A DNA stretch of 64,000 bases from Hyaloraphidium curvatum SAG 235-1 (Eukaryota > Fungi > Monoblepharomycota), in NCBI GenBank assembly GCA_025558095.1, contig JAIVFI010000043.1:62001-126000 (forward strand), in the 5' to 3' direction. The notes beneath the pieces were generated by a model that worked only from the letters and a program-made list of their open reading frames with translations, made no database searches and had not been told where the DNA came from. This document shows, piece by piece, positions 45,031-63,379 of this stretch (position 1 is its first letter; each line of letters begins with the position of its first letter). The position numbers and the translations under genes were made by a program.

Positions 45031-47602
45031 TCAGGCAGCCTGCGATCCGCCCTGCACGACCTGCTTGACCTGGCCGACGACCTCGCGGGTGTCCTGCCTC
45101 CCCTTGTCGAACTCGCTTTTGGCCTCCTGCGTCGAGAGCCCGGTGGTGCCCTGGCCAGCCGCGCCCGCTCCGATCTGGCCCTCAGCGCGAACCCCGGCAG
45201 ATCCTCCCGTGCCCCCGATCTGGCCTCCAGCTCCGATCTGGCCCCCGGCTCCGATCTGGCCCTGGCCCCCGGCGCGAACCCCGGCAGATCCTCCGACTTC
45301 GACGCCGACCTGGCCGCCGACCTGGCCTCCGACCTGAGCAGAGCGGTTGCCCGGCGCCGACGTCGTTCCCTGCTGGTAGCCCTGCTCGGCGGTGCCCCTG
45401 CCCTGCTCGTAGGCCTGCGACGCCGTCTCCTGGGCGCGTCCGGCAGCCTGGCGACCCTGCTCGACGCCCCGCTCGGCGGTGCTCCTGGCGGACTCGTAGG
45501 CCTGCGAGGCGGTCTCCTGCGCGCGGCCCGCAGCCTCGCGACCGGTCTCGATCCCGCGCTCGGCGGTGCTCCTCGCGGTGTCGTACGCCTGCTGCGCCGT
45601 CTCGCGTCCCGTCTCGATCGCACCCGTCACGGTCTCCTTGGAGGTCTCGTACGCCTGCAACGCGGTCTCCCGGGCACGGGCCGCGGCTTCCGAGGTGGCC
45701 TGCACGGCGGGCTGCACCAGGTTCTCGTTCAGCGCGGTGCCGATCTGCTGCGCGCGCTCGGTGGTGCTCTCCACGGCGGCTTCGACGGTCCCGACGGCGC
45801 GGCTGCCGAGCTCCTGGGCCGAGCGGGCGGCCTGCTCGGCGGTCTGGACGGCGGCCGAGGGCAGGTTCTGGATGGTCTCGGAGACGGCGGAGACGCCGCG
45901 CTGCGTGGTCTCGGCGATCCCGGAGGCGAGTTCCGAAGCGGATTCTCCGATCGCTGCGGGGTGCATAAAGTTAGCTGATGCGTCATCGAGAGTGCATCGC
46001 AAACACCAACAGCGTTCGGCGAGCCGGTCCTCGGGGACGGCGGGCTTGCCGGTGGCCAGCTCCTTGACGACCTCGACGCCGGCGACGGCGACCTGCCGGG
46101 CGTCTTCGCCGACCTTGCTCACGACCTGGGCGGCCTTGGAGAGGGCTTCCTGTCCGACCTGGCGGGCCTGGCCGACGACGCTCGAGACGGTCGACGCGGC
46201 GGAGGAGAGAACGGAGCCGGCGGTGCTGGCGGCGCTCTCGGCGGTCTCGTAGGTGGCGCGGGCGGCCTGCTGAGCCCCCTGGGCGGCGGTGCTGGCGGCC
46301 TGCTGACCGATCTCGACAGCGGTGCCCGCGGCCTGCTGTCCGAGCTCGACGGCACCCGACGCGACGCGCTGGGCACCCTGGGCGGCCTGGCTCCCGAGCT
46401 CGACGGCGGTGCTTGCGGCCTGCTGGGCGCCCTGGGCGACGGTGCTCGCGGCCTGGCTGCCGTTCTCGAGGGCTCTGGATCCGGCCTGTTGCACGCCGCT
46501 CGCGGCCATCTGCGCGCCCGTGGCGGCTGTCTCGAGGCCGACCTCGCCTGCTTCGTAGACGCGGCCGGCATTGCGGGCGGCGGTGTCCATGGCGGCTTGC
46601 GTGACGTTGGTCGCGGTGGCGGCGGCAGTGCCGGCGGCGCGTGCTCCGGTCTCGAGGGCCTGCGAAGCGATCGATCCCGTGGCCTGGAAAAGCGAAAGGC
46701 GTCAGATGATGCGAAGGCGTGATCGTGACGAGCGAATCACCTGGGCGGCACGGCTCCCGACCTCGGCGGCGGTCCCGGCGGCGCGACCGGCAACGTCAGC
46801 GGCGGCCTGCATGCCCTGCTGCCCCATCTCGGCCCCGCGCTCCATGGCCTGCTGGCCGGTCTGCACGGCGGAGCTGGCGGCCTCCCTGCCGGCCTGCATG
46901 GCCGAGCTTGCGGCCTGGCTGCCGGTCTGCATGGCGGAACCGATGGCTTCCCTCCTGGTCTGCAAGAAAAGCCTGATCAGATCATCGTTCAGAAGGCCCA
47001 ACGAAGATCACGCACCTCGGCCGCACGTCCAGCAGTCTGCTCCGCTTGGCCCATCATTCCTTGGCCGACCTCCTGACCGCGCTGATGACATGCGAAACCA
47101 TCAGTGATCTGGCACGACTCGGAACCCATTGCCCCGGAAATCACCTGCGCGACGTTGCTGGCCGACTCGCTGATCTGGCTGCCCATTCCCTGCCCAGGCT
47201 GACGAGAGATCTGGCCTCCCTGTCCGCCCCCGAGGGAGCCGGACGCCTGCGCGAGGGCGGAAACAACAAAGTCAGCGAAAGCTCGGCTCGGGCCCCGCAG
47301 CGCCGAAGGCGCACCTGCATGCTTCCGCCGACCGCGACGTCGCCCGAGAATCCTGTCGAGGTGCCGCTCCCGCCCACCGAAGCGCTTCCCGAGAGCCCGC
47401 CGGCGGCCCCGGTTCCGCCTGCCGCGCCCTGGCCCCGCGTGCCCGCCGAGCGCTCCATCGCGTCGATGCCGGGCGAGTCGGTGCCGCGCGGCACGGGGAT
47501 GCCGGGGACGGGCGGCTGCGCGAGGCCCTTGTCGAGCGTCGAGTACTCGACCCGGATGACCTCCTCGGGCTGCGGCGTGGGGATGTGCCTGCTGTCGGAC
47601 AT
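45031..47602 (-). CDS. LEA/apolipoprotein-like repeat protein (A/Q/G/T/E-rich), multi-exon
   Basis: 11/22-residue amphipathic repeats (e.g. TAQQAYDTARSTAERGIETGRE) and a GGQIG-type tail; almost no W, C or F. Confidence 0.6.
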
Positions 47603-48732: not shown

Positions 48733-49149
48733 GGTTGCCGGTGTCTTCTTCGGGGACGGAGGGGAGGGGCGGAGTCGAGCTGTGGAGCTACAAGACCGTC
48801 ACGTGCTCGCCGCGCGCCAACCCGGGAGACTGTCCCGGTTACGCTCGTTTAGGTAGCTCATTTCACCTGCTTCCCCACGACATCCTTGCCTACTTTTGAA
48901 GGGTCCGCCGTGGACGACGAGGATATTCTCGCAGCACTGCGCGAGGAAGCCAAAACAGACGGAACGGCCGCGCCGGTCAAGCAGACGAAGCGGCGGCACG
49001 TGGTCAGACCGCTCACGATGATAGGAGCTGTGGCTTTTCGATGAGCAAGAACCACCTTAGTTAGACAATAGTAGTCAGACAGTAGTTAATAGGTGACTCA
49101 GACGAAGGTGTAGGCTTGGTGGCGGAAAAGGAATCATCACGATCTGTAT

Positions 49150-49760
49150 CACAGGCGCTGAGCGCCCCCCAACCCCGATACATCACGTCACGCCATATAC
49201 ATTGAATTCGGGGAAGAGGGGAGGGGTTAGATGTCCGCCGAGCTGCGGGGTACAGGCTTCCTTGAACCTGTTCATAAGCTGTTGGCAACCCAGTACGCGC
49301 CCCCGCTGAACAACGGCGCGCAGACGGCCGGTCTGGCGGGCCATGAGACCATCGACATCCCAGTCTTTGCCGTCGGATTTGGTGCGCGGGGAAGAGATCT
49401 CTCGAGACCAAACACGAAGCTGTTCGTCCGCCGCGTCGTGCAGGCGGCCGAAGGTCGAGACCGCAAACCAAACGAGGTTGTGCACGGGGGGATCGGGAAC
49501 GTAGAACTGGTTGGCAAGGGCCGTCGCCCTTCTTCTGAACAGCGCGGCACAGGAGCGAGGTCTCGTTGCGGGAGTCCGTCGAGCGCGAGGCCGTGACGCT
49601 GGGGGTAACAACGGTGACGTCGACGAGGTCAGAACGAGCGCCCACGCGGCGGATGACGATGTCGGTCGAGGTTTTCCCGATGTCCAGGGCTCGTGCAAGT
49701 GTGGTGTCTTTGGGCACGAACCCATTCTCGAGGTAACCACGATGACGACGGTCGACGACC
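49150..49760 (-). mobile_element. CRE-like RLE non-LTR retrotransposon, 3' part (endonuclease region, frameshifted)
   Basis: TDIVI...LVDVTVVTP...KK / FAVSTFGRL, a PD-(D/E)xK-type region; continuous with 60427-60806 once the Gypsy element is removed. Confidence 0.75.
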
Positions 49761-50236
49761 TGCGACGGTCCGGGTCGGAACCGGGCCTGAAGCTCTAACC
49801 CGGCGCGCGAATCCCGCTCGGCTCTTCGGGTCGGATAGGCCCTGAATATGAATAAGCGAACAGCGCTGAAGATACTTGACTGTAGCCGGGGGAAAGAGGT
49901 TACGGGATGTCTCCCGGGGTGCGTCCCAAGGGCTCTCAGAACGAGGATCCGGCCGGGCGGGGTTCCGCACGGTGGTCGAACGACACGGAGAGCACGTAGA
50001 GTCAACTGGCGATCAAGATTGTACTGTTACATGTCCCGCTCTTTATATATCCCAGGAGGGTGGCTGTGCCGAGTCACTTGCGAGTCGCTCGCGAGTCGCT
50101 CGCGAGTGACTCGCGAGTCACTCGCGAGTCGATCGCGAGTCGATCACGAGTCGATCGCGAGGACCGACGCCTCCACGCCTCCGAACCGAAAATGAAAATA
50201 CCCTTGTCCGAATGTCAGACGTCCTGTACCTTCGCA
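49761..50236 (-). repeat. 3' LTR (476 bp)
   Basis: No differences from 59951-60426 on base-by-base reading. Confidence 0.97.
50042..50161 (-). promoter_or_regulatory. LTR U3 module: eight 11-bp palindromic units followed by TATA (copy at 60232-60351)
   Basis: (GAGTSRMTCGC)x8 at 50071-50161; ATATATAAAG on the minus strand about 20 bp downstream. Confidence 0.7.
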
Positions 50237-50257
50237 CGCCCCCACCCAAAAGAAGGC
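50237..50257 (-). other. 3' polypurine tract with upstream U-tract
   Basis: Minus strand CCTTCTTTTGGGTGGGGGCG directly abuts the 3' LTR TG. Confidence 0.8.
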
Positions 50258-50378
50258 GCCGCCCTCGGCGCCACGAAATCGAAGATCCTCCGCGGAGTGA
50301 CGTCATGCTTGCAGTAGAAGATGTTGAAGGCCGAGGTGGAGACAACAGATGTTGGAGAGTGTAGGGCCGAAGGGTGGC

Positions 50379-51644
50379 TTAGGCGTCCTCAAAGTCGACG
50401 TCGGCGTCCGCCTCGTCGTCGCTCGGCGGCGGGGCGCGGAGCCGGCGGGTAAAGCCGAGAGCGAAGGCGGCATGCACGGCTGAGCCGTCCGCGGCCGAGG
50501 GGGTGTAGACCGGGGGCATGGTCGACTTGTAGGGAGCGGCCGGGATGTCGTCGTACAGGGCGGCCAAGAGGCCGTCGTCCTGCGAGACGATGGAGGAGGC
50601 GTCGCTGCTGGACACGCTCTCGGGGCGAGGAGCTGGAGGTTGCATATCCCCAGCCTCATCGTCGGAGGTGACGAGGTCCTCGTCCTTGACGCGGCCGACC
50701 GGCGTGGAGGTGACCACGGCGGGCGTCGTTTGCCCCGCCAGGGGAGCCACTTGATTGCCGAGGAAGCGACGCAGGAGGGCCCGTTGCTCGTCGGCGGTCT
50801 TGGTGAAGTGCTCGCGCTGCGCGTTCAGGCCGGCCGTGAGGAGCGTGGTGTGGTCTTGAGCTGAAAGCATGAGCTGCTTGTGCTGCTCCGACCCAAATCG
50901 CTGCAGATGGGCCGCCAGGACGCTCTTGAGGTCGGCCGCAAACTCCGCCATGGGGCCATTGTTGTGACGGGCGAGATTGGTCTCGACGACGGTCTCGATG
51001 GTGGTTTCGAGGTTGGTCCCGGTCTGAGCAACCAGCCCGGCGAGGGAAGAGCCGAACTCCCTCAACTCCTCGATGGTAGCTTCGTCCACCAGGAGAATGC
51101 CGTTGAAGTTCTGACGTTGAGCCTCGAGCACCAACGCAAGCCGGTCGAGCTGCGTCTCGATGGCACCGAGACGAGCGTCGTCGGTCCGGCGCAAGGCGGT
51201 GACGGCGAACTCAAGTTCGCGGTGGCGGCCACTGAGGACCACCTGGAGCTCGTCACGCTGCTGGCGGATCTGGGCGTCCAGGCGGGCCTCTTGCTGCTCG
51301 AGCGTCGCCGTTACGCGGTCAAGAGCGTGCTGCTCCAGGTTGCCGACATTGACGAGGGTGTTGAGCACCGGGTGGAGTGCGTCGAGGGCTGCGCGGATGG
51401 GCATGACCGCGGAGAAGGCGGCCTGCTCGACCTTGTGCAAGTGGGCCGTCGTCTGGGAGTGTCTGACGTCGAGGTCGGCCCGGAGGTCGTCCAGCCGGGT
51501 CGAGAGGGAGGCAAGCGCCGACCGATAGTCCGGGGGTACGACGCCAGGCAACGCAGCGACGGGCGCAGTCGCCGGCGGCGGCGCCGTGGCCACATGCGGC
51601 CGGCGGGGCCGCAGGTTGTGGCCGGCAGTCGTGGGGGTCGCCAT
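50379..51644 (-). CDS. Retrotransposon accessory ORF (421 aa, coiled-coil, acidic tail)
   Basis: Intact ATG-TAA ORF between pol and the 3' LTR; long heptad-like helical core; no signal peptide or TM segment. Confidence 0.75.
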   Translation of the reverse strand: MATPTTAGHNLRPRRPHVATAPPPATAPVAALPGVVPPDYRSALASLSTRLDDLRADLDVRHSQTTAHLHKVEQAAFSAVMPIRAALDALHPVLNTLVNVGNLEQHALDRVTATLEQQEARLDAQIRQQRDELQVVLSGRHRELEFAVTALRRTDDARLGAIETQLDRLALVLEAQRQNFNGILLVDEATIEELREFGSSLAGLVAQTGTNLETTIETVVETNLARHNNGPMAEFAADLKSVLAAHLQRFGSEQHKQLMLSAQDHTTLLTAGLNAQREHFTKTADEQRALLRRFLGNQVAPLAGQTTPAVVTSTPVGRVKDEDLVTSDDEAGDMQPPAPRPESVSSSDASSIVSQDDGLLAALYDDIPAAPYKSTMPPVYTPSAADGSAVHAAFALGFTRRLRAPPPSDDEADADVDFEDA

Positions 51645-51713
51645 GGGAGACGGTAGCGGCGAGGTCGACGTTGGGTGCGTAGTCCGCGGCCGCGGCCTCC
51701 TGTGGTCCGCCGC

Positions 51714-51883
51714 TTATATGGTGCGAAGCGCAGGCAACTCGCGAGTGCATCGCAAGTCGCTCGCGAGTGACTTGCGAGCGACTCGCGAGTGACTCGCGAG
51801 TGACTCGCGAGTCACTTGCGAGTCAACCGCGAGCCAACCGCGAGTCAACCGCGAGTCAACTGCGAGTCGAGTCGACCGCGAGT
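51714..51883. promoter_or_regulatory. Putative internal (bidirectional) promoter: about 13 11-bp ACTCGCGAGT-type units plus TATA
   Basis: Array at 51735-51883 with the same unit as the LTR array; CATATAAG on the minus strand at 51713-51720, about 70 bp before the accessory ORF ATG. Confidence 0.65.
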
Positions 51884-52023
51884 TCGCCCGCACACCGGGT
51901 CACCAGTCCCCGCCACGGGGGACGGGGCGCGAGCGAGGGCCGTACGCCATTGCGTCGACGAAAGCGCTCGCGGGGGATCGCGACGTAGGGTCCAGAAGAG
52001 CTGGGGGGATCTCCGCGCCTGTC

Positions 52024-53009
52024 ATGAGTGCGGAGCTGCCGAACGTCGTCCCGCCGAGTTCGTGGTTCGAGGTTCGGTTGCCGACCTTCGACGTCCTGCT
52101 GTGCACCAAGGTAAGAGCGTAGCGGCGTGGTCCTCGAACGGGAGCTCAGCGCCGCGCCAGGAGGACGACGTGGTCGACTGCTTCCTGCAACTGGTGCGTC
52201 TGGCCGCCATGCGCGGGATGTTGCCGCTGGCCGAAGAGGCTGGGAACGTCGTTGTCGAGGTCCGAGTGCTCCGTCGGCTCGTCGCCGAGCTGCGCGAGGC
52301 CGGCGGGACCGCCAAGCTGCGCGAGGCTGGCGGGGCCAGAGGCAACGACCCGATCGCGGCCGCGGCCGCAACCCGGACCTCCGGCGTCTTCCTGCCGGCG
52401 ATGTCGTCGAAGGGTGCGCCTTCCGTCGGCGAGGGCGAGTCGGCGGCGGACTCGAGGGAGGAGCTCGAGGCGGCCGACGAAGTCCCCGTGCTGTCAGTCA
52501 CGCTTCATGCGCCCTCTTGGGAGCTGGACCACTTAGGCGACTTCGAGGCCGCCACTGAACAAGGGAGCGCCTTCCAGACGGCCCAAACGGCAACTTCAGG
52601 TAAAGACGAGGGGCATGTGGTGCAGCGCGGGGAGGCCCGGGAGCAGATTGCGCAGGTGAACGGCTCGACGGGAGTACGCCCCACAAGCGCTGATCGTCAC
52701 TGAATGTGCCAGATGAAGAAGTCGTCGCCGGTCTGGGGCTTGAAGGCGGAACGGGTGACGAAGAAGGTCCCTGATGCCGTGCCGGCAGGCTCCTTCCTCC
52801 GATGGAAGATTGCCGGAACGTACGCCGGCGAACTGTACCGGAGCCCCACCAAGGGCGAAGTGGCGGTATGCTCGTTCCCGTGGTGCCATCTGGTAAAGCA
52901 CAAGGCTAAGGGCCTCCTGGGCAATCTGAACACGCATTTTCAGTCCGGGTATCACAAGTTGGCGTTCGAGGGGGTCGAGGATAGGCTCGAGGTAGTACGT
53001 CGGGTTTGA
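52024..53009 (+). CDS. Antisense, spliced gene within the retrotransposon; about 298 aa with a C-terminal BED-type zinc finger
   Basis: Exons 52024-52110, 52161-52673, 52713-53009. Introns AAG|GTAAGA..CAG (50 nt) and GGA|GTACGC..GCTGAT..CAG (39 nt), both phase 0. SSPVW...CSFPWC...GNLNTHFQSGYH. Confidence 0.65.
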
Positions 53010-53079
53010 GTCAGTGAAAAGCCGGGGATCGGAGCACAGAGATGGTAGTGCTGTGACCGGATAGACGTCGTTGGTGTTA

Positions 53080-56000
53080 CTAGCGACGCCGAGTCCGCAT
53101 GCGCCTGGGGAGACCCGTCGGGAGCTGGAGACCAACGCGATCGGCATAGGCGCGGACGATCCCTATGGCGCCGTGCAACATGTCCAGAGGGAGCTTGGTC
53201 GTGCGAGCGAAGCCCCGCCACTTGACCTCGAACTTGAGTCCGTGACCCTGGCCCTCGTGGCCGACGATGTCCTCGACGGTGTACTCCTGCTCGTTCCCAA
53301 GCGCGTTCTCGACCTCGATTTCCTCTTCGAACTCGTTCACCGGTTCCGAGAGATCGAGCTCTTCACCGGCGGCGAGCTCCGGGGCGCGTGCGTTCCACGA
53401 GCGCGCGTTGAAGGTGGCCGACTCCCAAGGCTTGTAGCGCGCCAGCCGGTCCACATGCACAGTGGTGACGTGGTCGGTCTCGTAGACGTGTCTACACTTC
53501 CAGGTGAGCTCGGTGTGGCCTGACTCCTCGATGCGGTAGGGCCCAAGATAACGAGAGACGAACTTGCCCGGCTCGCCCTTGCGCGGTCGTTCTGGTCCCC
53601 AGATGAGCACGAGGTCGCCGGGGCGGAAGGTAATCGGAAGCCGGGTAGCGTTGGCCTTGGCGTTCCGAGTCTCCGCCGCTGCGGCCATCTTCTCGGCCAC
53701 CAGGTCGTAGGCCGCACGAAGCTGCGCCACGAGCTCCACGACGTAGGTCCGCCGGCGCTCATCCTCTGTCTTCTTGTCCTCCTCGTCGCTGGCCCGCAGG
53801 TGCACTGGCTCGCGAATCTCGGTCTCGTCGTAAAGTAGGTCGAGCGGAATACGAGCATCCCGACCATGCATCAGAAAGAACGGAGTTTCGCCGGTCGTCG
53901 CGTGGATGGAGGTCCGGAAGGCAAAGATGACCCCCACGATGTCCTCGTCCCATGTCTGGTAGTTCTTGGAGACCGCTGCGCTCAGGGCGTCGATGATCCA
54001 CCGGTTCGGGCGCTCCGCGAGGGAAGCCCTGGGATGCCCAACCGTGACCAGGCCCCGGTTGATGCCGAGTAGCTTGAGCAGGTACTCCATGTAATGGTTG
54101 TCCAGGTTCGAGGCGTTGTCGTGGTGAATCCGCTTCGGAAGACCGTGCTCGAGAATCCATCGCGTATAGAGCAGCTTCGCCGTCGTCGGCCCAGAGAGGT
54201 CCGGAGTCGGATACGCCGCGACCCATTTAGTGAACGGATCGTAGACGACGAGAAGGTACTTGTTGCCGCGGGGCGTGGCCGGATTGATCTCGCCGATGTA
54301 GTCGATGTAGATGTCCTCGTTGGGACCTGTGAGAGGAACCGATTTCAGTAAGCCCTGGTTCGATACCGAAGGCATCTTCCGGGTCATGCATGTAAGGCAG
54401 GCTCGCGTCCAGCGGCGAACGTCGTGCGCCATGCCGACCCAATATACGCGGCGCCGCAGATTGCTGTACGCCCGGTGTCGCCCGACGTGCCCGCTCAGGG
54501 GATCGTCGTGCGCACGTTGCAGGTAGGCCTCCCTCAGCTCGTGCGGTATCACGAGCTGGGTGACCGGGATACGACGGGTACCAGTCGCGAGTACATCGCG
54601 CCGGCAGAGCACGCCGTCCGTAGCGAGGAAGTACTGCTCGCCGTACTTCTTGCAGAATTTGGCCAGATTCACGTTGGGAGGGAGCTCCCCGTCTCGCACG
54701 AAGCGGATCAGCGCGCTGGTCTCGACGTCGGCTTCTTGCACTTTGCGCAGGGCATCCCGGGATCTGACGTCGGCAAGGTCAATAGCACTGATGCCCCCGA
54801 CATCGGGTAGCACCTCAAGCAGTGCCGGATGAAGGAACGCCAGGTCTCGCTCAGGCACGTCTGCCGGGTCGACCTGTGCGTTCGTCGTTGGGATCGGCAG
54901 GAGGATCTGCGTCTCCGGTGCCGCAGCCTCGGGCAGGGTCCCCGGATCGCTCCACAGGGTTCCCTCCACTGCGGCAACCGTGGCCGGGAACTCCGTGCCA
55001 GACAGCACTCGCTCCATTGATTCACAATTGACTGAGGAACCCGCAGTAGCTCGTCCCGAGTCTGACTCGGTGACTGGGGTTGACGAAGAACGGGAAGTCT
55101 GACCGAGATCACTCCCGGAGAGGAATCCGGGCGCCCGTCCCCCCCCAGAAAAAGAAGAAAAAGGCAAGGGGTCGGGAGGGTTTGGGGGCCAAAAGGCAGG
55201 GATGTCCAAGATTTCCTCGGGGTCGCCCATAGGCACGTCCTCGTCGGGCGACGGCGCCACGAGCTGACGAGACAGGAAGTCGGCGTTGGAGTTCGCTTTG
55301 CCCGAGCGATGGATGATCTGGAACCTGAAGTCCGAGAGCCGGAGGATCCAGCGCTGTAGGCGGCCCGGCTTGGAGGTCTCCAAGAGCCATTTGAGGGCGC
55401 TATGGTCGGTGACCACCTCAAACTCGTCCCCGATCAAATACGCCCAGAAATGCTCGCATGCCCAAACAACGGCCAGGGCTTCGCGCTCCCGAGTGTCCCA
55501 CTTGCGCTCGTTCGGCTGCAGAGCGCGGCTGGCGTAGGCGATGACGTACTCCTTGCCATCGGAGTCCCGCTGGCTGAGCACCGCGCCGAGGCCGATATCG
55601 CTGGCATCCGTGAACAAGACGAAGCGCTTGGAAAAGTCGGGGCGACGGAGCACGGGCGCCGACGTAAGCCGTTCCTTTAGCATACGGAAGGCGGCCTCGC
55701 ATGCGTCGTCCCAGGCCCGAGAGACCGAGACGCCGTCCTGCGTCAGGCGGGTGAGCGGGCTGGCAATGTTGGCGTAGCCGGCAATGAAGGGGCGATAGTA
55801 GTTGGAGAGGCCGAGAAACGATTGGAGCTCCTTCTTGGTCGTTGGGCGGGGGAACTGGTCCACCGCGCGGGTCTTCTCGGGGTCGACCTTGAGGCCGTCG
55901 GCGGTGACGTAATGCCCGAGGTATTTGACCTCGCGGCGGAAGAACTTGCATTTGGCCAGCTTCAGAGTCATCCCGGCCTCGCGCAGTCGGTCAAAGAGGA

Positions 56001-58137
56001 GCTCCAGGTGCACGAGGTGCTCGTCGACCGTCTGCGAGAAGATAATGATGTCGTCGATGAAGACCACCAAGCAGTACCACTGGAGGCCGGCGAGGAGCTC
56101 GTCCATGATCCGAGCAAAGGTTGCAGGAGCGTTGGTAAAGCCCATGGCCATCCGCTCCCACTGGTAGAGACCGCGGTGCGTCGTGAAGGCCGTCTTTTCC
56201 TTGTCCTCGTCGGCCACCTCCACGTGCCAAAAGCCGGAGCGGATGTCGCAAACGCTCCACACCTTGGCCGCGCTGAGGAGAGCGAGAGTGTCGCTTGGGT
56301 TCTTCATCGGGTAGACGTCGCGCTTGGTGGCGGCGTTGAGCTTCCGGTAATCGATCACCAGGCGCCATTCGCCCGAGCCGTGCCCTTTTGGCACCATGAT
56401 GCAGGGCGTGGCCCAGGGGCTTCGCGAGGGGACGACTACGCCCTGCACGAGCAGGTCGTCGATGATCTTGTCCATTTCCCCGCGAAGCCGGAACGGGGTC
56501 CGGTACGGCATCTGGTGGATCGGCTTGAGGTCGCCCGTGTCGATCCGGAAGCGATGGTTGCGCAGCTTGCCGATCCAAGGACCAAACACGTCCCGGTAGC
56601 GGTCGCAGAGCTTATGGAAACGAGGTTTGTCCCCCTCGCTCAGGATCGTTTGGTCCATCTTGAGCTCGATAGCCTCGACCGGAGGAGGCTCCACGCCGGG
56701 AGGCTGAGGTGGTCCAATCGATCCCGGCGAGGGCACCGCGAACAGATCGATGGTCTCCTCGACCGTGAGCGTGGATTCGGCCGGTTCGGTGTGGGGCAGC
56801 TCGGGCTCCAGCATCGAGATCTGCGCGGGAGCCAGATACGTGGGCGGTTCCGGAGCGAGAAATCCAGGAATCCGCACGCGGAAGCGGCCGAGGTGGGTGC
56901 CCGGGCCGATCGTGACCGGTGTCGTCCCGTAGTTGCGGATGAGAATCGGCAGCCGACCGTCTCTGTCGGGCGTCGCCGACGGGATGATGAAGAGGCGATC
57001 GAACGGCGAAGTGTTCGGCGTCTCGATGACCCCTGTCAAGTCCATCTCCACGACGGTCGCCAAGGGAGTCGTCGGGGCCAGCTCAGCGGTGATCGAGACG
57101 TCCTCGTTGGGGTAGACCGTGATGGAGGTGGTTGAATGGAGCGGGGCGACCAGGTGTGATCCGAAGAGCGGTCGCGCAACAATGTGCATTGGCACGACGA
57201 CCCCCTCCGGATCGTCCTTGAAATAGAGGACCGGCGTCTCCCAGTCCATCTGAACGCGTAGGGCGGAGAGCCAAGGGGTGCCGAGGATCACGTCGTCCAT
57301 GAGACCGTCCATGATGGCGACGTCCATGACGCAGTGTTGATTCCCGACCAGGATGTCCATCTTAGCAACTCCGCGGACCCACATGGTTCCGCCGGCCGCG
57401 GCCGTGCTGAGGGTGCCGAGTGTCCATGGTTTGATCGGTGGCGACGGGTGGATCCGGCAGAAGAAGGACGACCGAACCGCCACCACTGAGGCACCGGAGT
57501 CGACGAGGGCCGCGGGGGTATTCACGCCGTTGACCCATGCCGAAACGCGTGCCGCCTGATAGTGGAACTGCACTTGCGAAGTCCACGTCCAGCGATCCGG
57601 CGGAGGGGCGACCGGAGCAGGTGGCCGCGGGCGAGGCCGAGGGCCAGGCAGCGGTGGTCGTGCGTAGGCGGAAGGAGGAGGGGGCCTTTCGAAAGGTCCG
57701 GGAACGGCGCGGACGGTCGGGCCCTCGTGCATAGGTGCATCCGCTGATCCCGCGTCCGCATCCTGTGCCGCCGGTTCACCGTTTCCCACGACCTCGACCG
57801 AGCCGGGCGACGCCGAATCCGCTGCCGGCGGCGGGGCCAGGGTCTCGTCGATCGGCATGAGCGCCTCCCGCTGCTGACGAACGGCGGCCTGTCGAGCTGC
57901 CTCCGCCTCGAGGAAGAGGATGTACTCCGTGCCCCCGAAGGGCCAATGATGAACGTGGTCCTCCGCCGTCGGTTCATCGGTCGCGGAATCCGACAACTCC
58001 GGCGATCCGCCAGGAGATGAAGGGTCCGTGCCGTCCGGCAGCGGGGAAGTTCCAGGAAGAGGTTCCACATGTGGTTCAAGAGCTTGGATCTCTGCCCCCC
58101 TATGGCCGTGCGGCACTGAGGGCAAAGCTAGTTTTTT
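53080..58137 (-). CDS. pol: Pol polyprotein: PR, RT, RNase H, integrase, chromodomain (via -1 frameshift)
   Basis: LVDSGAS; WRLVIDYRKLN, MGFTNAP, FIDD; TDAS, EREALA, TDH; HHCC and D-D-E; EYTVEDIVGH...FEVKWRGF. Confidence 0.96.
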   Translation of the reverse strand, partial: KKLALPSVPHGHRGAEIQALEPHVEPLPGTSPLPDGTDPSSPGGSPELSDSATDEPTAEDHVHHWPFGGTEYILFLEAEAARQAAVRQQREALMPIDETLAPPPAADSASPGSVEVVGNGEPAAQDADAGSADAPMHEGPTVRAVPGPFERPPPPSAYARPPLPGPRPRPRPPAPVAPPPDRWTWTSQVQFHYQAARVSAWVNGVNTPAALVDSGASVVAVRSSFFCRIHPSPPIKPWTLGTLSTAAAGGTMWVRGVAKMDILVGNQHCVMDVAIMDGLMDDVILGTPWLSALRVQMDWETPVLYFKDDPEGVVVPMHIVARPLFGSHLVAPLHSTTSITVYPNEDVSITAELAPTTPLATVVEMDLTGVIETPNTSPFDRLFIIPSATPDRDGRLPILIRNYGTTPVTIGPGTHLGRFRVRIPGFLAPEPPTYLAPAQISMLEPELPHTEPAESTLTVEETIDLFAVPSPGSIGPPQPPGVEPPPVEAIELKMDQTILSEGDKPRFHKLCDRYRDVFGPWIGKLRNHRFRIDTGDLKPIHQMPYRTPFRLRGEMDKIIDDLLVQGVVVPSRSPWATPCIMVPKGHGSGEWRLVIDYRKLNAATKRDVYPMKNPSDTLALLSAAKVWSVCDIRSGFWHVEVADEDKEKTAFTTHRGLYQWERMAMGFTNAPATFARIMDELLAGLQWYCLVVFIDDIIIFSQTVDEHLVHLELLFDRLREAGMTLKLAKCKFFRREVKYLGHYVTADGLKVDPEKTRAVDQFPRPTTKKELQSFLGLSNYYRPFIAGYANIASPLTRLTQDGVSVSRAWDDACEAAFRMLKERLTSAPVLRRPDFSKRFVLFTDASDIGLGAVLSQRDSDGKEYVIAYASRALQPNERKWDTREREALAVVWACEHFWAYLIGDEFEVVTDHSALKWLLETSKPGRLQRWILRLSDFRFQIIHRSGKANSNADFLSRQLVAPSPDEDVPMGDPEEILDIPAFWPPNPPDPLPFSSFSGGGRAPGFLSGSDLGQTSRSSSTPVTESDSGRATAGSSVNCESMERVLSGTEFPATVAAVEGTLWSDPGTLPEAAAPETQILLPIPTTNAQVDPADVPERDLAFLHPALLEVLPDVGGISAIDLADVRSRDALRKVQEADVETSALIRFVRDGELPPNVNLAKFCKKYGEQYFLATDGVLCRRDVLATGTRRIPVTQLVIPHELREAYLQRAHDDPLSGHVGRHRAYSNLRRRVYWVGMAHDVRRWTRACLTCMTRKMPSVSNQGLLKSVPLTGPNEDIYIDYIGEINPATPRGNKYLLVVYDPFTKWVAAYPTPDLSGPTTAKLLYTRWILEHGLPKRIHHDNASNLDNHYMEYLLKLLGINRGLVTVGHPRASLAERPNRWIIDALSAAVSKNYQTWDEDIVGVIFAFRTSIHATTGETPFFLMHGRDARIPLDLLYDETEIREPVHLRASDEEDKKTEDERRRTYVVELVAQLRAAYDLVAEKMAAAAETRNAKANATRLPITFRPGDLVLIWGPERPRKGEPGKFVSRYLGPYRIEESGHTELTWKCRHVYETDHVTTVHVDRLARYKPWESATFNARSWNARAPELAAGEELDLSEPVNEFEEEIEVENALGNEQEYTVEDIVGHEGQGHGLKFEVKWRGFARTTKLPLDMLHGAIGIVRAYADRVGLQLPTGLPRRMRTRRR
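58090..58137 (-). promoter_or_regulatory. -1 ribosomal frameshift signal
   Basis: A AAA AAC heptamer immediately before the gag TAG, followed by a 10-bp stem CTTTGCCCTC/GGGGGCAGAG. Confidence 0.8.
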
Positions 58138-59783
58138 GGCATCGAAGGGGTGTTGCCGAGGCGAGACTTCCAGTTGAGTGGGCGGCGGTTGGCATTCTTC
58201 TCCAACTCCCAGCACTCGTCCTGAGCATGCCCATCCATGCCACAGAGATGGCAGTGGCGAGGCTGGAAGCGCTTCTGGTCGCGGTACTCCGAGGTGAAGG
58301 GCCGGCGATCCTGGCGCTCCTGCTGCTGGCGGGGCCGATCGATCGGAGGAGGCCTCGCGGGGGGGTTCGACCTGGTCTCCGCGGCCTGAACCTGATGGCG
58401 AGGCGACGGCAGCAGCTTGGTGATGAGCTCCTTGATCTCGACGAGGTCGCTGTTCGGCCCCGAAGGCGGCAACGGCTGGCTCCGACGAGACTGGAAGGGG
58501 ACGAAACGGCGCGGAGGCCGGAACGCAGACTCCCCCGGCGGTCCACCGGTGGGCCTGCGCTCTCCCTTAGGCTCCAGCAGCTTTGTGAGAGCCTGCGTAT
58601 GAGCCAGCAGCACTTCCGTCGTCGCCTTGTCGGTCGCCTTGGAGGAGCCCGAAGACGAGTGCTGGCCGACCAGAGCCGGAATCTCCGAAATCGAGTTCTG
58701 GCCCAGGAAACGGATGTCGCGCGGCTGCGCAGGGCCCGATGCTTGCATGACGGTGCGCATCTTCTCGATGACCTTGGTGACGGAAGTGCGGTTGATGAGG
58801 TGATCCCCGAGGAGCTCCAGCGCCTTCCCGCGTAGCTCCGGGCGCAGTCCGTAGAGCAGGTTCTGGCCGTACACGCTGTCTTGCACTTCCCTGGTAGGAA
58901 GCTGATCGCCGCAGTGCGAGAGGAAACGCGTCTCGGCCAGGGATACGCGGGCAACGAAGGCGTCGAGGGTCTCATCGTTGGTCATCTGAATCGTGTTGTA
59001 GTGCCGGCGATAATGCATCGATGCGTCGCGGGGCTCGAAGTGGTAGCGTAGCCAGGCAAGCACATCGTTCTGGGTCACCGGAGGATAGGTGGCCGTCGCG
59101 GGATAGTCCGGAGGGCGGTTCTGCGGCGTGATGTTGTGCCACATTGCGCGCGGCAGAGGCCCAAGGAAGACCGGGAAGACCTTGACGAGGTTGTTGATGG
59201 AGCCGAACGCCGTGAGAACCGTAGTGAGGTCGCGGAAGAAGTCTTCCGGGTCCTGCGTAGCGGGATCGAAGGGCTGAACAGAAGCAGGCAGCAGCTGAGC
59301 CGGGAGCTTGGCGGCTCCGCCCTGGCGATCCGCCTGGGGGAGGCCGGTGCTTCCATCGTTCGGCGGCTGAGCGCCAACGATGGCCCGTACGGCGTCGACG
59401 AACTGCTGCGGCTGGAGACCAGCGGCGGCAGCGTTGACAGCCGGGGCTTGCTCGCTCCGCTGACCCTGCTGCTGTGCGGCGAGCTGCTGGAGCTGCTGCG
59501 CTGCAAGCTGCTCGGCGGCGGCTTGCTGTTGAACTTGGGCAGCTGGCAACTGCTGAGCGGTCTGTTGCGCCACGAGCTGAGCGGCAAGCTGATCGGCGAC
59601 GGCTTGCTGGGCGGCTTGCTGGGCGGCGAGTTGGGCGACGTCGTTGGCGGCGGCGCCGACTTGCTGGATCGCGGCCTGCGCAGCTTGGATAATCGCCTGG
59701 GCCTGCGGGTTGTTCTGCAAATCGTTAGCTTCCTGAGGCTGCTGAACCTCCTGCTGAGGGGCGGCTTCTTGAACGGGGTCCAT
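58128..59783 (-). CDS. gag: Gag with Q/A-rich N-terminus and CCHC zinc knuckle
   Basis: First ATG at 59783 (MDPVQ); QMTNDETLDAF capsid-like motif; CHLCGMDGHAQDEC. Confidence 0.9.
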   Translation of the reverse strand: MDPVQEAAPQQEVQQPQEANDLQNNPQAQAIIQAAQAAIQQVGAAANDVAQLAAQQAAQQAVADQLAAQLVAQQTAQQLPAAQVQQQAAAEQLAAQQLQQLAAQQQGQRSEQAPAVNAAAAGLQPQQFVDAVRAIVGAQPPNDGSTGLPQADRQGGAAKLPAQLLPASVQPFDPATQDPEDFFRDLTTVLTAFGSINNLVKVFPVFLGPLPRAMWHNITPQNRPPDYPATATYPPVTQNDVLAWLRYHFEPRDASMHYRRHYNTIQMTNDETLDAFVARVSLAETRFLSHCGDQLPTREVQDSVYGQNLLYGLRPELRGKALELLGDHLINRTSVTKVIEKMRTVMQASGPAQPRDIRFLGQNSISEIPALVGQHSSSGSSKATDKATTEVLLAHTQALTKLLEPKGERRPTGGPPGESAFRPPRRFVPFQSRRSQPLPPSGPNSDLVEIKELITKLLPSPRHQVQAAETRSNPPARPPPIDRPRQQQERQDRRPFTSEYRDQKRFQPRHCHLCGMDGHAQDECWELEKNANRRPLNWKSRLGNTPSMPKN

Positions 59784-59931
59784 GTTTGGCGAAGGGGAAT
59801 GAACTTGGTTGACGGAATACGGTTGACAGAAAAGAGTGGCAGTCGACAAGCGCCGGTGCCAGGCGAAGTTGTTTTTGGATTATCGAAGTCGAAACTGAAG
59901 TCGAACGAGGTGTCGAAGACCCGAGAGCAGG

Positions 59932-59949
59932 ATCACGGAGGTCGGACCA
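59932..59949 (-). other. Primer binding site, probably tRNA-Tyr
   Basis: TGGTCCGACCT starts 1 nt after the 5' LTR and is complementary to a tRNA 3' end AGGUCGGA-CCA, as in plant-type tRNA-Tyr(GUA). Confidence 0.65.
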
Positions 59950-59950
59950 G

Positions 59951-60426
59951 TGCGACGGTCCGGGTCGGAACCGGGCCTGAAGCTCTAACCCGGCGCGCGA
60001 ATCCCGCTCGGCTCTTCGGGTCGGATAGGCCCTGAATATGAATAAGCGAACAGCGCTGAAGATACTTGACTGTAGCCGGGGGAAAGAGGTTACGGGATGT
60101 CTCCCGGGGTGCGTCCCAAGGGCTCTCAGAACGAGGATCCGGCCGGGCGGGGTTCCGCACGGTGGTCGAACGACACGGAGAGCACGTAGAGTCAACTGGC
60201 GATCAAGATTGTACTGTTACATGTCCCGCTCTTTATATATCCCAGGAGGGTGGCTGTGCCGAGTCACTTGCGAGTCGCTCGCGAGTCGCTCGCGAGTGAC
60301 TCGCGAGTCACTCGCGAGTCGATCGCGAGTCGATCACGAGTCGATCGCGAGGACCGACGCCTCCACGCCTCCGAACCGAAAATGAAAATACCCTTGTCCG
60401 AATGTCAGACGTCCTGTACCTTCGCA
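59951..60426 (-). repeat. 5' LTR (476 bp)
   Basis: Identical to 49761-50236. Confidence 0.97.
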
Positions 60427-60806
60427 GACCACGCCACGGGAGGCGAGCTTGTCCTTGAGCTCATCCGCCAACGCAGATTCAAGCGCGTTGTGCCGCGCAA
60501 CCTTGCCCATTATCGGGCACGTGAAGGCGTGCAGGAAGTCGGCTCCCCGCGGCGCAAGGATGCGTGTGACCTGCCTGCCACTGCCGTCATCGACAGTGCA
60601 CCCGAGCGGGCAGAGCATCTGCGATGGTAGGGCCGAGAGCCAAGGGGCAGGGAGACCGAGGTCGGTACAGATGTTCAGCTGCAACGCCTCGTCGTCCAGG
60701 CCGAATCATCACGCTTTCCGTTGAATTTTGGCTTTCCACCAACTGGCGGGCAGGCGACGATGGTCCGGTGGGTTTGGAGCTCAGGGCCCAGCTTGCCCCG
60801 CCGTCT
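60427..60806 (-). mobile_element. CRE-like RLE non-LTR retrotransposon, upstream part (CCHC and RHN region), 5'-truncated
   Basis: GASWAL..P, DLGLP, CPLGC...HAFTC...RHNAL; the empty site reads KLASRGVV-VDRRHRGYL in frame. Confidence 0.75.
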
Positions 60807-61036
60807 AATCCGACGGCAAAGACTGGGATGTCGATGGTCTCATGGCCCGCCAGACCGGCCGTCTGCGCGCCGTTGTTCAGCCGGGGCGCGTACTGGGCTG
60901 CCAACAGCTTATGAACAGGTTCAAGGAGGCCTGTACCCGGCAGCTCGGCGGACATCTAACCCCTCCCCTCTTCCCCGAATTCAATGTATATGGCGTGACG
61001 TGATGTACCGGGGTCGGGGGGCTCAGCGCCTGTGAT
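60807..61036 (+). repeat. Inverted copy of the 3'-terminal ~230 bp of the CRE-like element
   Basis: Reverse complement of 49148-49379 with about 6 substitutions and a 2-nt indel. Confidence 0.9.
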
Positions 61037-61081
61037 GGAGATCTGATAGAGATCTGATCGCGGCAGTCCGATTGCCAAGCT

Positions 61082-63379
61082 GAACGCGTGGCTGGCGGCC
61101 TTCCCCGACCACGTCGTCATGAAGGTCGACTCTAGGAACGCCTTCAATACGCTGCGCCGCCTCTTCGCGCGCGAGGTGGTCCGCCAGGTGCCTCAGCTTA
61201 TCCCGTACTACAACCTCGTTTACTCGCGCCCTTCCCACGCCTACTTCCGCGACCGGCGCTCGGCGGAGCTCCTTTTCCGGATCACCATGTACGAGGGCAA
61301 CATCCAGGGCGACCCGCTGTCGTCTGCCATCTTCTCCTGCGCCATGAGCCGCATGCTGCGGCCCATCCGCTCTGGGCACCCCGACTGCCTCATCCTTGGG
61401 TACCTCGACGACCTCACCGTGGTCGGGCCGCTGGACTCGGTCATGGCCGTCCTGGGAGAGGTGCGTGACGGCCTTGCTTCCCTCGGCATGACCCACCGCC
61501 CGGACAAGAGCTACCTGCTTTCGCTCTCGACGAACCCGGCCGTGCTGGAGCGGGTGCGCGCGGCCGGTGCGGCCCACAACATCCGCGTCGCTGGCTTCCC
61601 GCCTCACGAGGCCGACCCCGAGGTGCATGCCACGGCGTCGGCCCCGGGCTCGCCTGACTTCGCTCGCTCGTGCGGCCTCAAGGTGGTAGGTGCCCCGGTC
61701 GGCACCCCTGCCTATGTGGAGTCGTTCCTCGCGGCCAAGATCGACTCCATTGCCGCTCTTCTCGATGAAATCGAGCGCGCCGCGCTCGGCTACGCCATGC
61801 CGGCCGACATCCCCTCCCTCCAGGGCCTGTACTCCCTCCTCCGTCTCTGTGTGACCCAGCTCTTCTCGTTTTGGCTCCGCATTCTCCCCCCCTCGGTTAC
61901 CCAACCCTTTGCTCGACGTCTTGACAACGCGCTTTTCACCACCTTCTTGCGCTTGCTGGGAGATCGGGCCGAGGATCTGGATCCGCTGTCGGTGGAGGGT
62001 CGGACTGTGCAGGAGCAGGTATTCTTGGGTCTGCACTACTCGGGGATGGGGCTTCTGTCATCGGAGAAGGTGGCCTCGGCGGCTTACCTGTCTTCACTCA
62101 ACCTCACGGCGGGCCCCTTGGACGCCATGCTTGGTCTTCGAACCTCGGCCCGGGGTGTGGGCGTGGAGCACGTGCGGGAACTGGTTCCCGTCATCGAGGC
62201 CCTCCGCCCCGCCTTTGAGCGTGTCGAGGATGACACGGCCGCAGCGTACGCCGAGGCTGCGCGTGCTGGGCAACCGGTGGGCGCCGCGCCCGCCCGCCGT
62301 ACGCTCCCTGCGGACGCCAGTTTCTTCGCTCAGCCGGTCTGGCACGGCCTGCAGAGCGACCTTACGCGTCTCGAGGACCAGCGCCGCCTCGCGGCTCTGA
62401 TTGCCTTGCAACCCGACACTTCCGCTGGTCTGGAGCGCCGCAAGCGGCTCGTCCAGGCGCAGGACGGCCTGTCGGCTTTCCTGACTGCCTCTCCCGCGCT
62501 GCTTGCCAACCACATTCGCAACAACTTTTTCCGCTTACTTGTACGCTTCCGGCTTTGCCTCCCGCTCCTGCACGAGGCCGACTACCCTGGTCTTTCCTTG
62601 CCCTGCCGGCGGGGCTGCAAGCGATCGGCCATGTCGCTGACGGGGGAGCACGCGTTCTCGGGCTGCTATGGCCGGGATCTCTTCAGTCCTGGTCACGACG
62701 ACATTTGCGCGGCCATCCGCGCGGCGCTTCGCTCCATCCCGCTCCTCCGCGTGCACCCCATGCCGCCAAACCTCCTTGCGCATGGCTACGAGACTGTCAC
62801 CCCGCCCACGCCTGCGGATGCTGGCCGCCTTGGCGACATTCTCATCACGCACCGCGAAACCCGGAAACGGTGGTTGCTCGAGATCAAGACCCTCACCTCT
62901 ATGGCCCATTTGCACACGGGCCTGGTCTTCTCGGTCCCGGGCCACGCAGTCGAACGGCGGGTCGAGGCCGCCAGGAAGGACTACTCCCGTTTCGTCTTCA
63001 ACGCCAACTTCTACCCTCTGATCGTGCTTGCTTTTGATTCGTACAGCGCTGTCTCTGCCACTTTCTCGCGCTTCTCCTCGGAGATGGGGCGCATCCAGTA
63101 TCCCGGGATCGTCGGCCGCGATGGGCAGCCCGTGGACCTCGATGGCCTTTACTCTCGTTTTGTGCGGCGCTTCCGCGAACGGATCGCGGTGGCCTGGGCT
63201 CTTGGCGTCGCGGCCCAACTCCAACACTGGCTTCAGCTGTGCACCGAAGCCGCCGCTGTCAACGCTCCGGCCCCCGGGCCGGTCGCTTTTGGTTTGAATG
63301 TAGATGAGGAGCTGATTCTTGGGGCGTAGGGGGATTTCTAAGTGTACGGTGGCATTGCTAGCTCCTCATTACATATAGG
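61082..63379 (+). mobile_element. Second CRE-like non-LTR retrotransposon, 5'-truncated, 14-bp TSD
   Basis: TSD CCGATTGCCAAGCT at 61068-61081 and 63380-63393. Confidence 0.88.
61119..63329 (+). CDS. RT (N-terminally truncated), CCHC, restriction-like endonuclease ORF
   Basis: DSRNAFN, GNIQGDPLS, YLDD, VVGAPVG, SGMGL, CRRGC...HAFSGC...GHD, GDILI...LEIK. Confidence 0.9.
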   Translation: MKVDSRNAFNTLRRLFAREVVRQVPQLIPYYNLVYSRPSHAYFRDRRSAELLFRITMYEGNIQGDPLSSAIFSCAMSRMLRPIRSGHPDCLILGYLDDLTVVGPLDSVMAVLGEVRDGLASLGMTHRPDKSYLLSLSTNPAVLERVRAAGAAHNIRVAGFPPHEADPEVHATASAPGSPDFARSCGLKVVGAPVGTPAYVESFLAAKIDSIAALLDEIERAALGYAMPADIPSLQGLYSLLRLCVTQLFSFWLRILPPSVTQPFARRLDNALFTTFLRLLGDRAEDLDPLSVEGRTVQEQVFLGLHYSGMGLLSSEKVASAAYLSSLNLTAGPLDAMLGLRTSARGVGVEHVRELVPVIEALRPAFERVEDDTAAAYAEAARAGQPVGAAPARRTLPADASFFAQPVWHGLQSDLTRLEDQRRLAALIALQPDTSAGLERRKRLVQAQDGLSAFLTASPALLANHIRNNFFRLLVRFRLCLPLLHEADYPGLSLPCRRGCKRSAMSLTGEHAFSGCYGRDLFSPGHDDICAAIRAALRSIPLLRVHPMPPNLLAHGYETVTPPTPADAGRLGDILITHRETRKRWLLEIKTLTSMAHLHTGLVFSVPGHAVERRVEAARKDYSRFVFNANFYPLIVLAFDSYSAVSATFSRFSSEMGRIQYPGIVGRDGQPVDLDGLYSRFVRRFRERIAVAWALGVAAQLQHWLQLCTEAAAVNAPAPGPVAFGLNVDEELILGA

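Follow-up and report, generated by a model that had tools for sequence, protein, structure and literature searches.

The classic spliced antisense gene of a retrovirus is HBZ of HTLV-1, which starts in the 3' LTR and encodes a bZIP protein. In plants, antisense additional ORFs lie between pol and the 3' LTR of Ty3/gypsy elements such as maize Grande (gene23), rice RIRE2, and Silene Retand, and ORFs with a TRP28 domain are among them (PMC11963269, PMC7264820). Tandem arrays are often found in the same region, a DNA-binding regulatory role is suspected for the products, and a promoter of its own has been reported for the antisense ORF of Grande (PMC7264820, PMC11963269). The word "intron" occurs 0 times in each of these two papers, and the plant review asks that antisense spliced transcripts be looked for (PMC7264820). 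Citing Romerio 2023, PMC11963269 presents HTLV-1 HBZ and HTLV-2 APH-2 as the model of a spliced antisense mRNA whose product is a nuclear regulator of the element's transcription. Antisense spliced transcripts are also described for TART, a telomeric non-LTR element of Drosophila (PMC1636488). Antisense accessory genes of such elements have so far been described mainly in plants and retroviruses; in the open-access literature, we found no fungal antisense case and none with a BED or C2H2 finger.

The window analyzed here, the whole stretch of 64,000 nucleotides, has a GC content of 60 to 73% (about 65%) and comes from the genome assembly of the early-diverging fungus Hyaloraphidium curvatum (31.9 Mb, 55 contigs). 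It holds a Ty3/gypsy LTR retrotransposon. This element and its copies are referred to as family A, and a sister element on another contig is referred to as family B. The main features are as follows.

49761-60426, minus strand: Ty3/gypsy LTR retrotransposon, host of the antisense gene
49761-50236, minus strand: 3' LTR, 476 bp, TG..CA ends, with a TATA-like box (50042-50050) and a U3 motif array inside
59951-60426, minus strand: 5' LTR, 476 bp, partner of 49761-50236
59849 to 58128, minus strand: presumed gag ORF in the gag position, 573 aa, 90% identical to family B gag
58215 to 53080, minus strand: pol, 1,711 aa, stop at 53080-53082, with protease, RT, RNase H, integrase, and a weak chromodomain match (Pfam)
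51644 to 50379, minus strand: ORF421 (50379..51644), a 421-aa accessory ORF in the sense orientation that occupies the env position
Contig C1, about 245772-255532: family B element, sister of family A

The LTRs at 49761-50236 and 59951-60426 are 100% identical, and the 4-bp sequence GACC is duplicated on either side of the element. The Pfam scores of pol were above the cut-offs for the RT, RNase H, and integrase zinc-binding models, the integrase core (rve) was just under its cut-off (27.7 bits versus 32.6), and the chromodomain match was subthreshold (E = 0.022; 15 bits versus a Pfam cut-off of 25). The host element is probably a chromovirus. No Pfam match was found for the ORF in the gag position (58128-59849). 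A putative primer-binding site at 59930-59950 on the minus strand adjoins the 5' LTR (sense-strand sequence TGGTCCGACCTCC), and the 3' LTR is bordered by a purine-rich tract, GGGTGGGGGCG (50237-50250).

The 2.8 kb that separates pol from the 3' LTR contains ORF421 in the sense orientation and the antisense gene. ORF421 belongs to no Pfam family; its middle is rich in Ala, Leu, Gln, and Arg, and its C-terminus is acidic. Conservation in family B is limited to this C-terminus (51% identity over about 74 aa; E = 2e-9), and the GC content of ORF421 at the three codon positions is 0.73/0.47/0.84.

The surroundings of the element are themselves repetitive. Its flanks form an inverted repeat of about 260 bp with 94% identity (49136-49394 and 60792-61047), which is adjoined by an ORF with a reverse transcriptase domain (RVT_1) at 61119-63329, placing the LTR element inside or beside a non-LTR retroelement. 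Further away, an ORF of 519 aa without a Pfam family (45031-46590, minus strand) overlies 33-nt and 87-nt direct repeats (45368-46935); the repeats are rich in GGCCTGCTG and represent repetitive host or repeat sequence.

The antisense gene is on the plus strand, and its parts are listed below; residues of the finger region are given in exon 3 numbering throughout.

52024..52110, plus strand: exon 1, 29 codons; the ATG at 52024 is the first ATG past the internal repeat array
52111..52160, plus strand: intron 1, 50 nt, GTAAGA..CAG, phase 0, seen as a joint in an X1 contig, with a homologous GTAAGC donor in family B
52161..52655, plus strand: exon 2, 165 codons; its N-terminal segment is helix-like and conserved and is followed by an Ala- and acid-rich region
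52656..52712, plus strand: intron 2, 57 nt, GTGAAC..CAG, phase 0, seen as a joint in an X1 contig, with a CTGAT branch-like site and an in-frame TGA at 52701-52703
52713..53009, plus strand: exon 3, 98 codons and the stop (53007-53009)
52803..52955, plus strand: zinc-finger region with W31, C53-x4-C58, and H75-x5-H81

One public run, X1, contains the stretch. Its contigs are unstranded and are labeled 'RNA?', and their RNA nature is deduced from the joints that they contain. One joint connects 52110 to 52161 (mapped from 52108 to 52159, with the cut at +2), and another connects 52655 to 52713 (mapped from 52652 to 52710, skipping 57 nt, with the cut at +3; donor GCGCAG/GTGAAC); both have GT..AG ends. 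Apart from the joints, the X1 contigs over the gene showed 0 differing letters from the window. Since the full genomic copies all run colinear with the window, these two joints are RNA products and not DNA variants, and the GT..AG polarity of the joints indicates that splicing took place on the plus strand, that is, in an antisense transcript. No unspliced form at either intron was found among the X1 contigs, and the spliced contigs fully accounted for the depth bins. One X1 contig is colinear from about the LTR edge into exon 2 and is uninformative on where the plus-strand RNA starts.

These joints bear on what the earlier note had read from the letters of this region. It had proposed a gene with introns on the antisense strand of an LTR retrotransposon, in agreement with both the joints and the annotation of the element, and its junction for intron 1 (52111-52160; 52110^52161) coincides exactly with the RNA joint. 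Its two phase-0 GT-AG introns and three exons also stand; however, the predicted product is 292 aa (29 + 165 + 98) instead of 298 aa. The difference lies in the second junction, given as 52673^52713: the acceptor at 52712/52713 was placed correctly, but the RNA joint puts the donor at 52655/52656, 18 nt upstream, in place of 52673/52674. As had been claimed, intron 2 removes an in-frame TGA (52701-52703 lies inside 52656-52712), the C-terminus reads SSPVW...C-x4-C...NLNTH-x5-H, and the stop codon is convergent with that of pol (53007-53009 and 53080-53082, 70 nt apart).

A genome-wide comparison of the region 51900-53079 gave 12 full copies that were 100% or nearly 100% identical, in addition to truncated copies. 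The near-identity of the 12 full copies indicates that the element family is very young. The antisense gene is intact in 12 of these 12 copies, all of which are colinear with the window and retain both introns. This retention is what the earlier note had expected from introns that are antisense to the genomic RNA. Because retrotransposition is established to run through the sense RNA, such introns would not be spliced from the template that is reverse transcribed and would therefore persist. The same near-identity makes dN/dS or frame disruption across copies uninformative within family A.

Deletion derivatives of the element were also found. In three copies on contig C11, about 11.08 kb apart, position 52243 is joined to ~54277-54281, with the loss of most of the antisense gene and the 3' end of pol; a third X1 joint, from 52241 to 54281, is a DNA deletion variant that corresponds to these copies. 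One copy on contig C2 has 52697 joined to 56096, and one older copy on contig C22 (about 96% identity) has 50598 joined to 52924. Elsewhere in the element, the X1 contig over ORF421 showed a word depth about three times that of the pol contigs.

Splicing of an antisense RNA does not require a protein product, and LTR elements that are regulated by antisense RNAs are well known (PMC12786077, PMC7264820). The spliced RNA could thus be a noncoding regulator, acting via double-stranded RNA or by interfering with the sense RNA, as Ty1 antisense RNAs do, with an ORF that is incidental in GC-rich DNA. Long chance ORFs are indeed common in this window of 65% GC, and ORF length alone is therefore no evidence of coding. 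We consequently relied on the RNA joints, conservation across families, and GC content by codon position as the deciding evidence for a gene. The GC contents at the first, second, and third codon positions were 0.55/0.45/0.86 for exon 1, 0.77/0.50/0.82 for exon 2, and 0.59/0.44/0.78 for exon 3, compared with reference values of 0.66/0.47/0.78 for pol and 0.57/0.49/0.79 for the host glutamine synthetase ORF. The three exons thus show a pattern like those of pol, gag, ORF421, and glutamine synthetase (GC3 of 0.78 to 0.86 and GC2 of 0.44 to 0.50), and this pattern is absent from both introns and from the opposite-strand ORF.

Conservation was examined by a six-frame test, in which the family A 3' region was cut into pieces, translated in all frames, and searched against its counterpart in family B. 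The best score was that of the exon 3 frame (67 bits; E = 1.4e-18), and the C-terminus of ORF421 was second. A minus-strand ORF over exon 3 (52596-53147) was rejected as a shadow frame, with 31 versus 67 bits across families and a GC3 of 0.62. Between families A and B, the identity of exon 3 by codon position was 0.47/0.62/0.43, with dN lower than dS. In the antisense gene, dN is about 0.7 and dS is saturated (>1), so that the ratios of 0.4 to 0.7 are only indicative. Several observations argue against a noncoding RNA and make that explanation quite improbable: protein conservation is seen only in the proposed frame, in a region whose DNA cannot be aligned; the CCHH residues do not vary; all three exons have a gene-like GC3; and in both families the in-frame stop falls inside an intron. 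Altogether, we consider it likely that the three-exon gene is a genuine, expressed, protein-coding antisense accessory gene of an active Ty3/gypsy element, probably a chromovirus, in H. curvatum.

The comparison with family B also bears on the history of the gene. The gag-pol DNA of the two families is 91 to 96% identical up to the pol stop, beyond which alignment is limited to the LTR and to 200 bp of about 70% identity at the end of ORF421. The antisense proteins are 43% identical in exon 3 and 32% identical in exon 2, and both intron positions are common to the two families. Intron 2 of family B has the same position, a length of 54 nt, and the ends GTGAGA..CAG, and again contains an in-frame TGA. 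The family B protein is annotated as a 'hypothetical protein' of H. curvatum (KAI9034073.1, here P0001); its gene model uses the 54-nt intron 2 and places the intron 1 acceptor more distally than the site homologous to the RNA-supported acceptor of family A. W8, W31, C53, C58, H75, and H81 are invariant between the families, as is an HK.AFEGV tail. For pol, dS was about 0.4 to 0.47 and dN was 0.02 to 0.04. Given that dS exceeds 1 in the antisense gene, the 3' module is far older than the divergence of gag-pol. The A and B elements are mosaics that have long preserved this module intact. Family B is represented by a degenerate copy, with one in-frame stop in the aligned part of pol and a 5' LTR that matched over 168 nt only, and it is without a 444-nt pol segment of family A (window 57469-57912).

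Transduction is a known source of additional ORFs (PMC7264820), and the introns suggest a cellular origin at some past time. The gene could accordingly be a passenger, a transduced host gene that has kept its introns and has no role for the element. However, no paralogue was found outside families A and B in the 31.9-Mb genome, and every full copy carries the gene, as does the deeply diverged module of the second family, which has the same layout. Such a pattern marks conserved additional ORFs and not sporadic transductions (PMC7264820, PMC11963269), and we regard a passenger as highly improbable. By the definition of an aORF-3R (PMC7264820), namely an antisense ORF between pol and the 3' LTR that is present in all or most copies, 52024-53009 on the plus strand is one, with its occurrence in 12 of 12 full copies and in family B. 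The likeness to the plant antisense ORFs thus extends to the position, the orientation, the presence in all or most active copies, and the tandem arrays. In contrast, the plant ORFs belong to non-chromovirus lineages, and their products have TRP28 or no known domain instead of a CCHH finger; the antisense product of H. curvatum showed no match to TRP28 (PF04195), as with every Pfam family. The case in this early-diverging fungus further differs in that spliced introns are seen and an internal array duplicates the apparent LTR enhancer. With TART it shares introns on the antisense strand of a retroelement (PMC1636488), although TART is a non-LTR element.

Homologues were sought with the family A exons queried separately, and P0001 served for the full-length view. 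No homologue of exon 2 was found beyond family B. With HMMER, an exon 3 profile searched against 1.84 billion representatives matched only P0001 of family B and gave weak multistretch matches. Matches to bacterial Ig-repeat proteins were discarded as repeat noise, and two plant zf-met-repeat proteins (P0003 and P0005) were matched in the His helix only. A metagenome scan yielded 175 pattern matches, 0 of which were confirmed, and a sequence search of the PDB gave nothing significant.

The conserved residues of exon 3 follow the pattern W-x21-C-x4-C-x16/18-H-x5-H, with C-x4-C in both families and an invariant H-x5-H. The zf-BED signature is C-x2-C ... H-x3-5-H. BED fingers (PF02892), as in DREF, BEAF-32, ZBED1, and hAT transposases, resemble the present motif in the aromatic residue upstream of the Cys pair, the long Cys-to-His loop (16 to 18 residues), H-x5-H, and the 'NL..H' start of the helix. 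They differ in having C-x2-C where C-x4-C is found here, and no HMM match was obtained at any threshold tried. In Pfam searches, exon 3 of both families was without a match even at E ≤ 10, zf-BED included, and a six-frame search of the whole genome with PF02892 was blank. AlphaFold2 models had a pLDDT of 45.5 for exon 3 (two-row alignment) and 31 for P0001 (single sequence), values too low for a fold search; the low-confidence model of exon 3 shows a hairpin with the two Cys residues followed by a helix with H75. By language-model features, zf-BED clusters were nearest for family A (21 of 30 matches; score, 0.92; 170 to 173 shared features) and also, more weakly, for family B (0.81).

The label "BED-type" given by the earlier note is therefore not demonstrable, considering the lack of a Pfam match, the C-x4-C pair in place of C-x2-C, and the poor structure models. 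Its caveat that the distance from W to the first Cys (about 45 aa) is unusually long is true of W8, which is 45 residues before C53, but the second conserved Trp, W31, is only 22 residues before C53 and so lies within the range of about 15 to 22 residues at which BED fingers have an aromatic. The safest name for the predicted domain is a CCHH finger of the C2H2 class, conserved and spaced much like a BED finger, with family membership unproven.

A real protein might instead carry a finger of the U1-like, zf-met, or JAZ type that binds RNA or double-stranded RNA and not DNA arrays, and it might, for example, shield the sense-antisense duplex from RNA silencing or handle the RNA of the element. 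Convergent transcription of the element must yield complementary RNAs, the H-x5-H spacing is typical of the zf-met class, and the only database matches outside the genome were the plant proteins P0003 and P0005. In addition, hhalign aligned the His helix with a zf-met finger at 85% (NLNTHFQSGYHKLAFEG against NMNSHLQGRKHKAAYEA). That alignment, however, covers only 21 columns and leaves the Cys half unaligned. The zf-met finger has the form C-x2-C-x12-H-x5-H, with 12 residues between the Cys pair and the first His, whereas 16 to 18 are found here. Exon 3 had no match to the zf-met and U1-like families of Pfam (PF12874 and PF12171), and its language-model neighbors were zf-BED and zf-C2H2_12, not zf-met. 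On balance, we think an RNA-binding finger of this type unlikely.

The region also contains short tandem repeats.

50070..50170: U3 array of the 3' LTR, 11-bp period, palindromic core ACTCGCGAGT; the same array is at 60260-60360 in the 5' LTR
51735..51885: internal array, again of 11-bp ACTCGCGAGT repeats, with ORF421 (minus strand) and the antisense gene (plus strand) diverging on its two sides
51714..51719, minus strand: TATA-like box (minus-strand sequence, ATATAA); in the sense direction, it closely follows the internal array and precedes the ORF421 ATG by about 70 nt

The LTR and the internal region have a similar layout in the sense direction, an array followed by a TATA-like box; in the LTR, the U3 array is upstream of the box at 50042-50050. 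On the other side, 139 nt separates the edge of the internal array from the first plus-strand ATG (52024). A dimer of the ACTCGCGAGT motif occurred 49 times in the genome, compared with 0 times for the reversed control, and the positions that were checked were copies of the family A element. Family B has GACGCCGT(C/T) arrays in its LTR and internal region with the same layout, including the sense-side TATA-like box. The U3 array of family B was also found at five further loci (C1:231675, C1:522173, C3:155586, C15:541966, and C22:167944), which are probably solo or interrupted LTRs.

This arrangement suggests that the internal array at 51735-51885 is a candidate bidirectional promoter that copies the LTR enhancer of the family itself. 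The internal copy would allow divergent transcription of the antisense gene, and the TATA-bearing side of the same array would drive the sense ORF421. An internal promoter is more likely than the 3' LTR as the start of the plus-strand RNA, in contrast to HBZ, from which the H. curvatum protein also differs in being a zinc finger without sequence relation to it. For copy-number-dependent bidirectional transcription in vertebrates, a palindromic TCTCGCGAGA element is sufficient (PMC6192621); its core, CTCGCGAG, is shared with the family A motif, and the likeness is an analogy only.

A finger protein of the C2H2 class with BED-like spacing could act as a nucleic-acid-binding regulator. Its most likely targets would be the family-specific arrays of the LTR U3 and of the internal promoter, through which it would tune the element's own transcription. 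Under this proposal, the element would encode its own sequence-specific transcription factor for the palindromic 11-bp arrays of its LTR enhancer and internal bidirectional promoter. The resulting autoregulatory loop, as a transactivator or as a copy-number brake, would coevolve as a swappable 3' module of protein and arrays between elements with nearly identical gag-pol. Both the arrays and the finger protein vary from one family to the other, which fits a self-encoded regulator; with two families only, this covariation is only suggestive, and a host factor acting on the arrays is equally possible. We therefore put the autoregulatory loop forward tentatively, as a possibility that we currently hold to be rather doubtful.

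Antisense genes of plant LTR elements are known but their functions are unknown, and H. curvatum provides a compact fungal case. The gene is annotated only in the single-copy family B version (KAI9034073.1), and the case shows that such genes escape gene finders in which repeats are masked. Its useful properties are splicing that is seen directly, a recognizable motif of metal-binding and nucleic-acid-binding type, and a young, multicopy element. In addition, two natural versions are available, each with its own protein and its own repeat motif, and the idea of a self-encoded regulator would thereby be testable by binding and reporter swaps.
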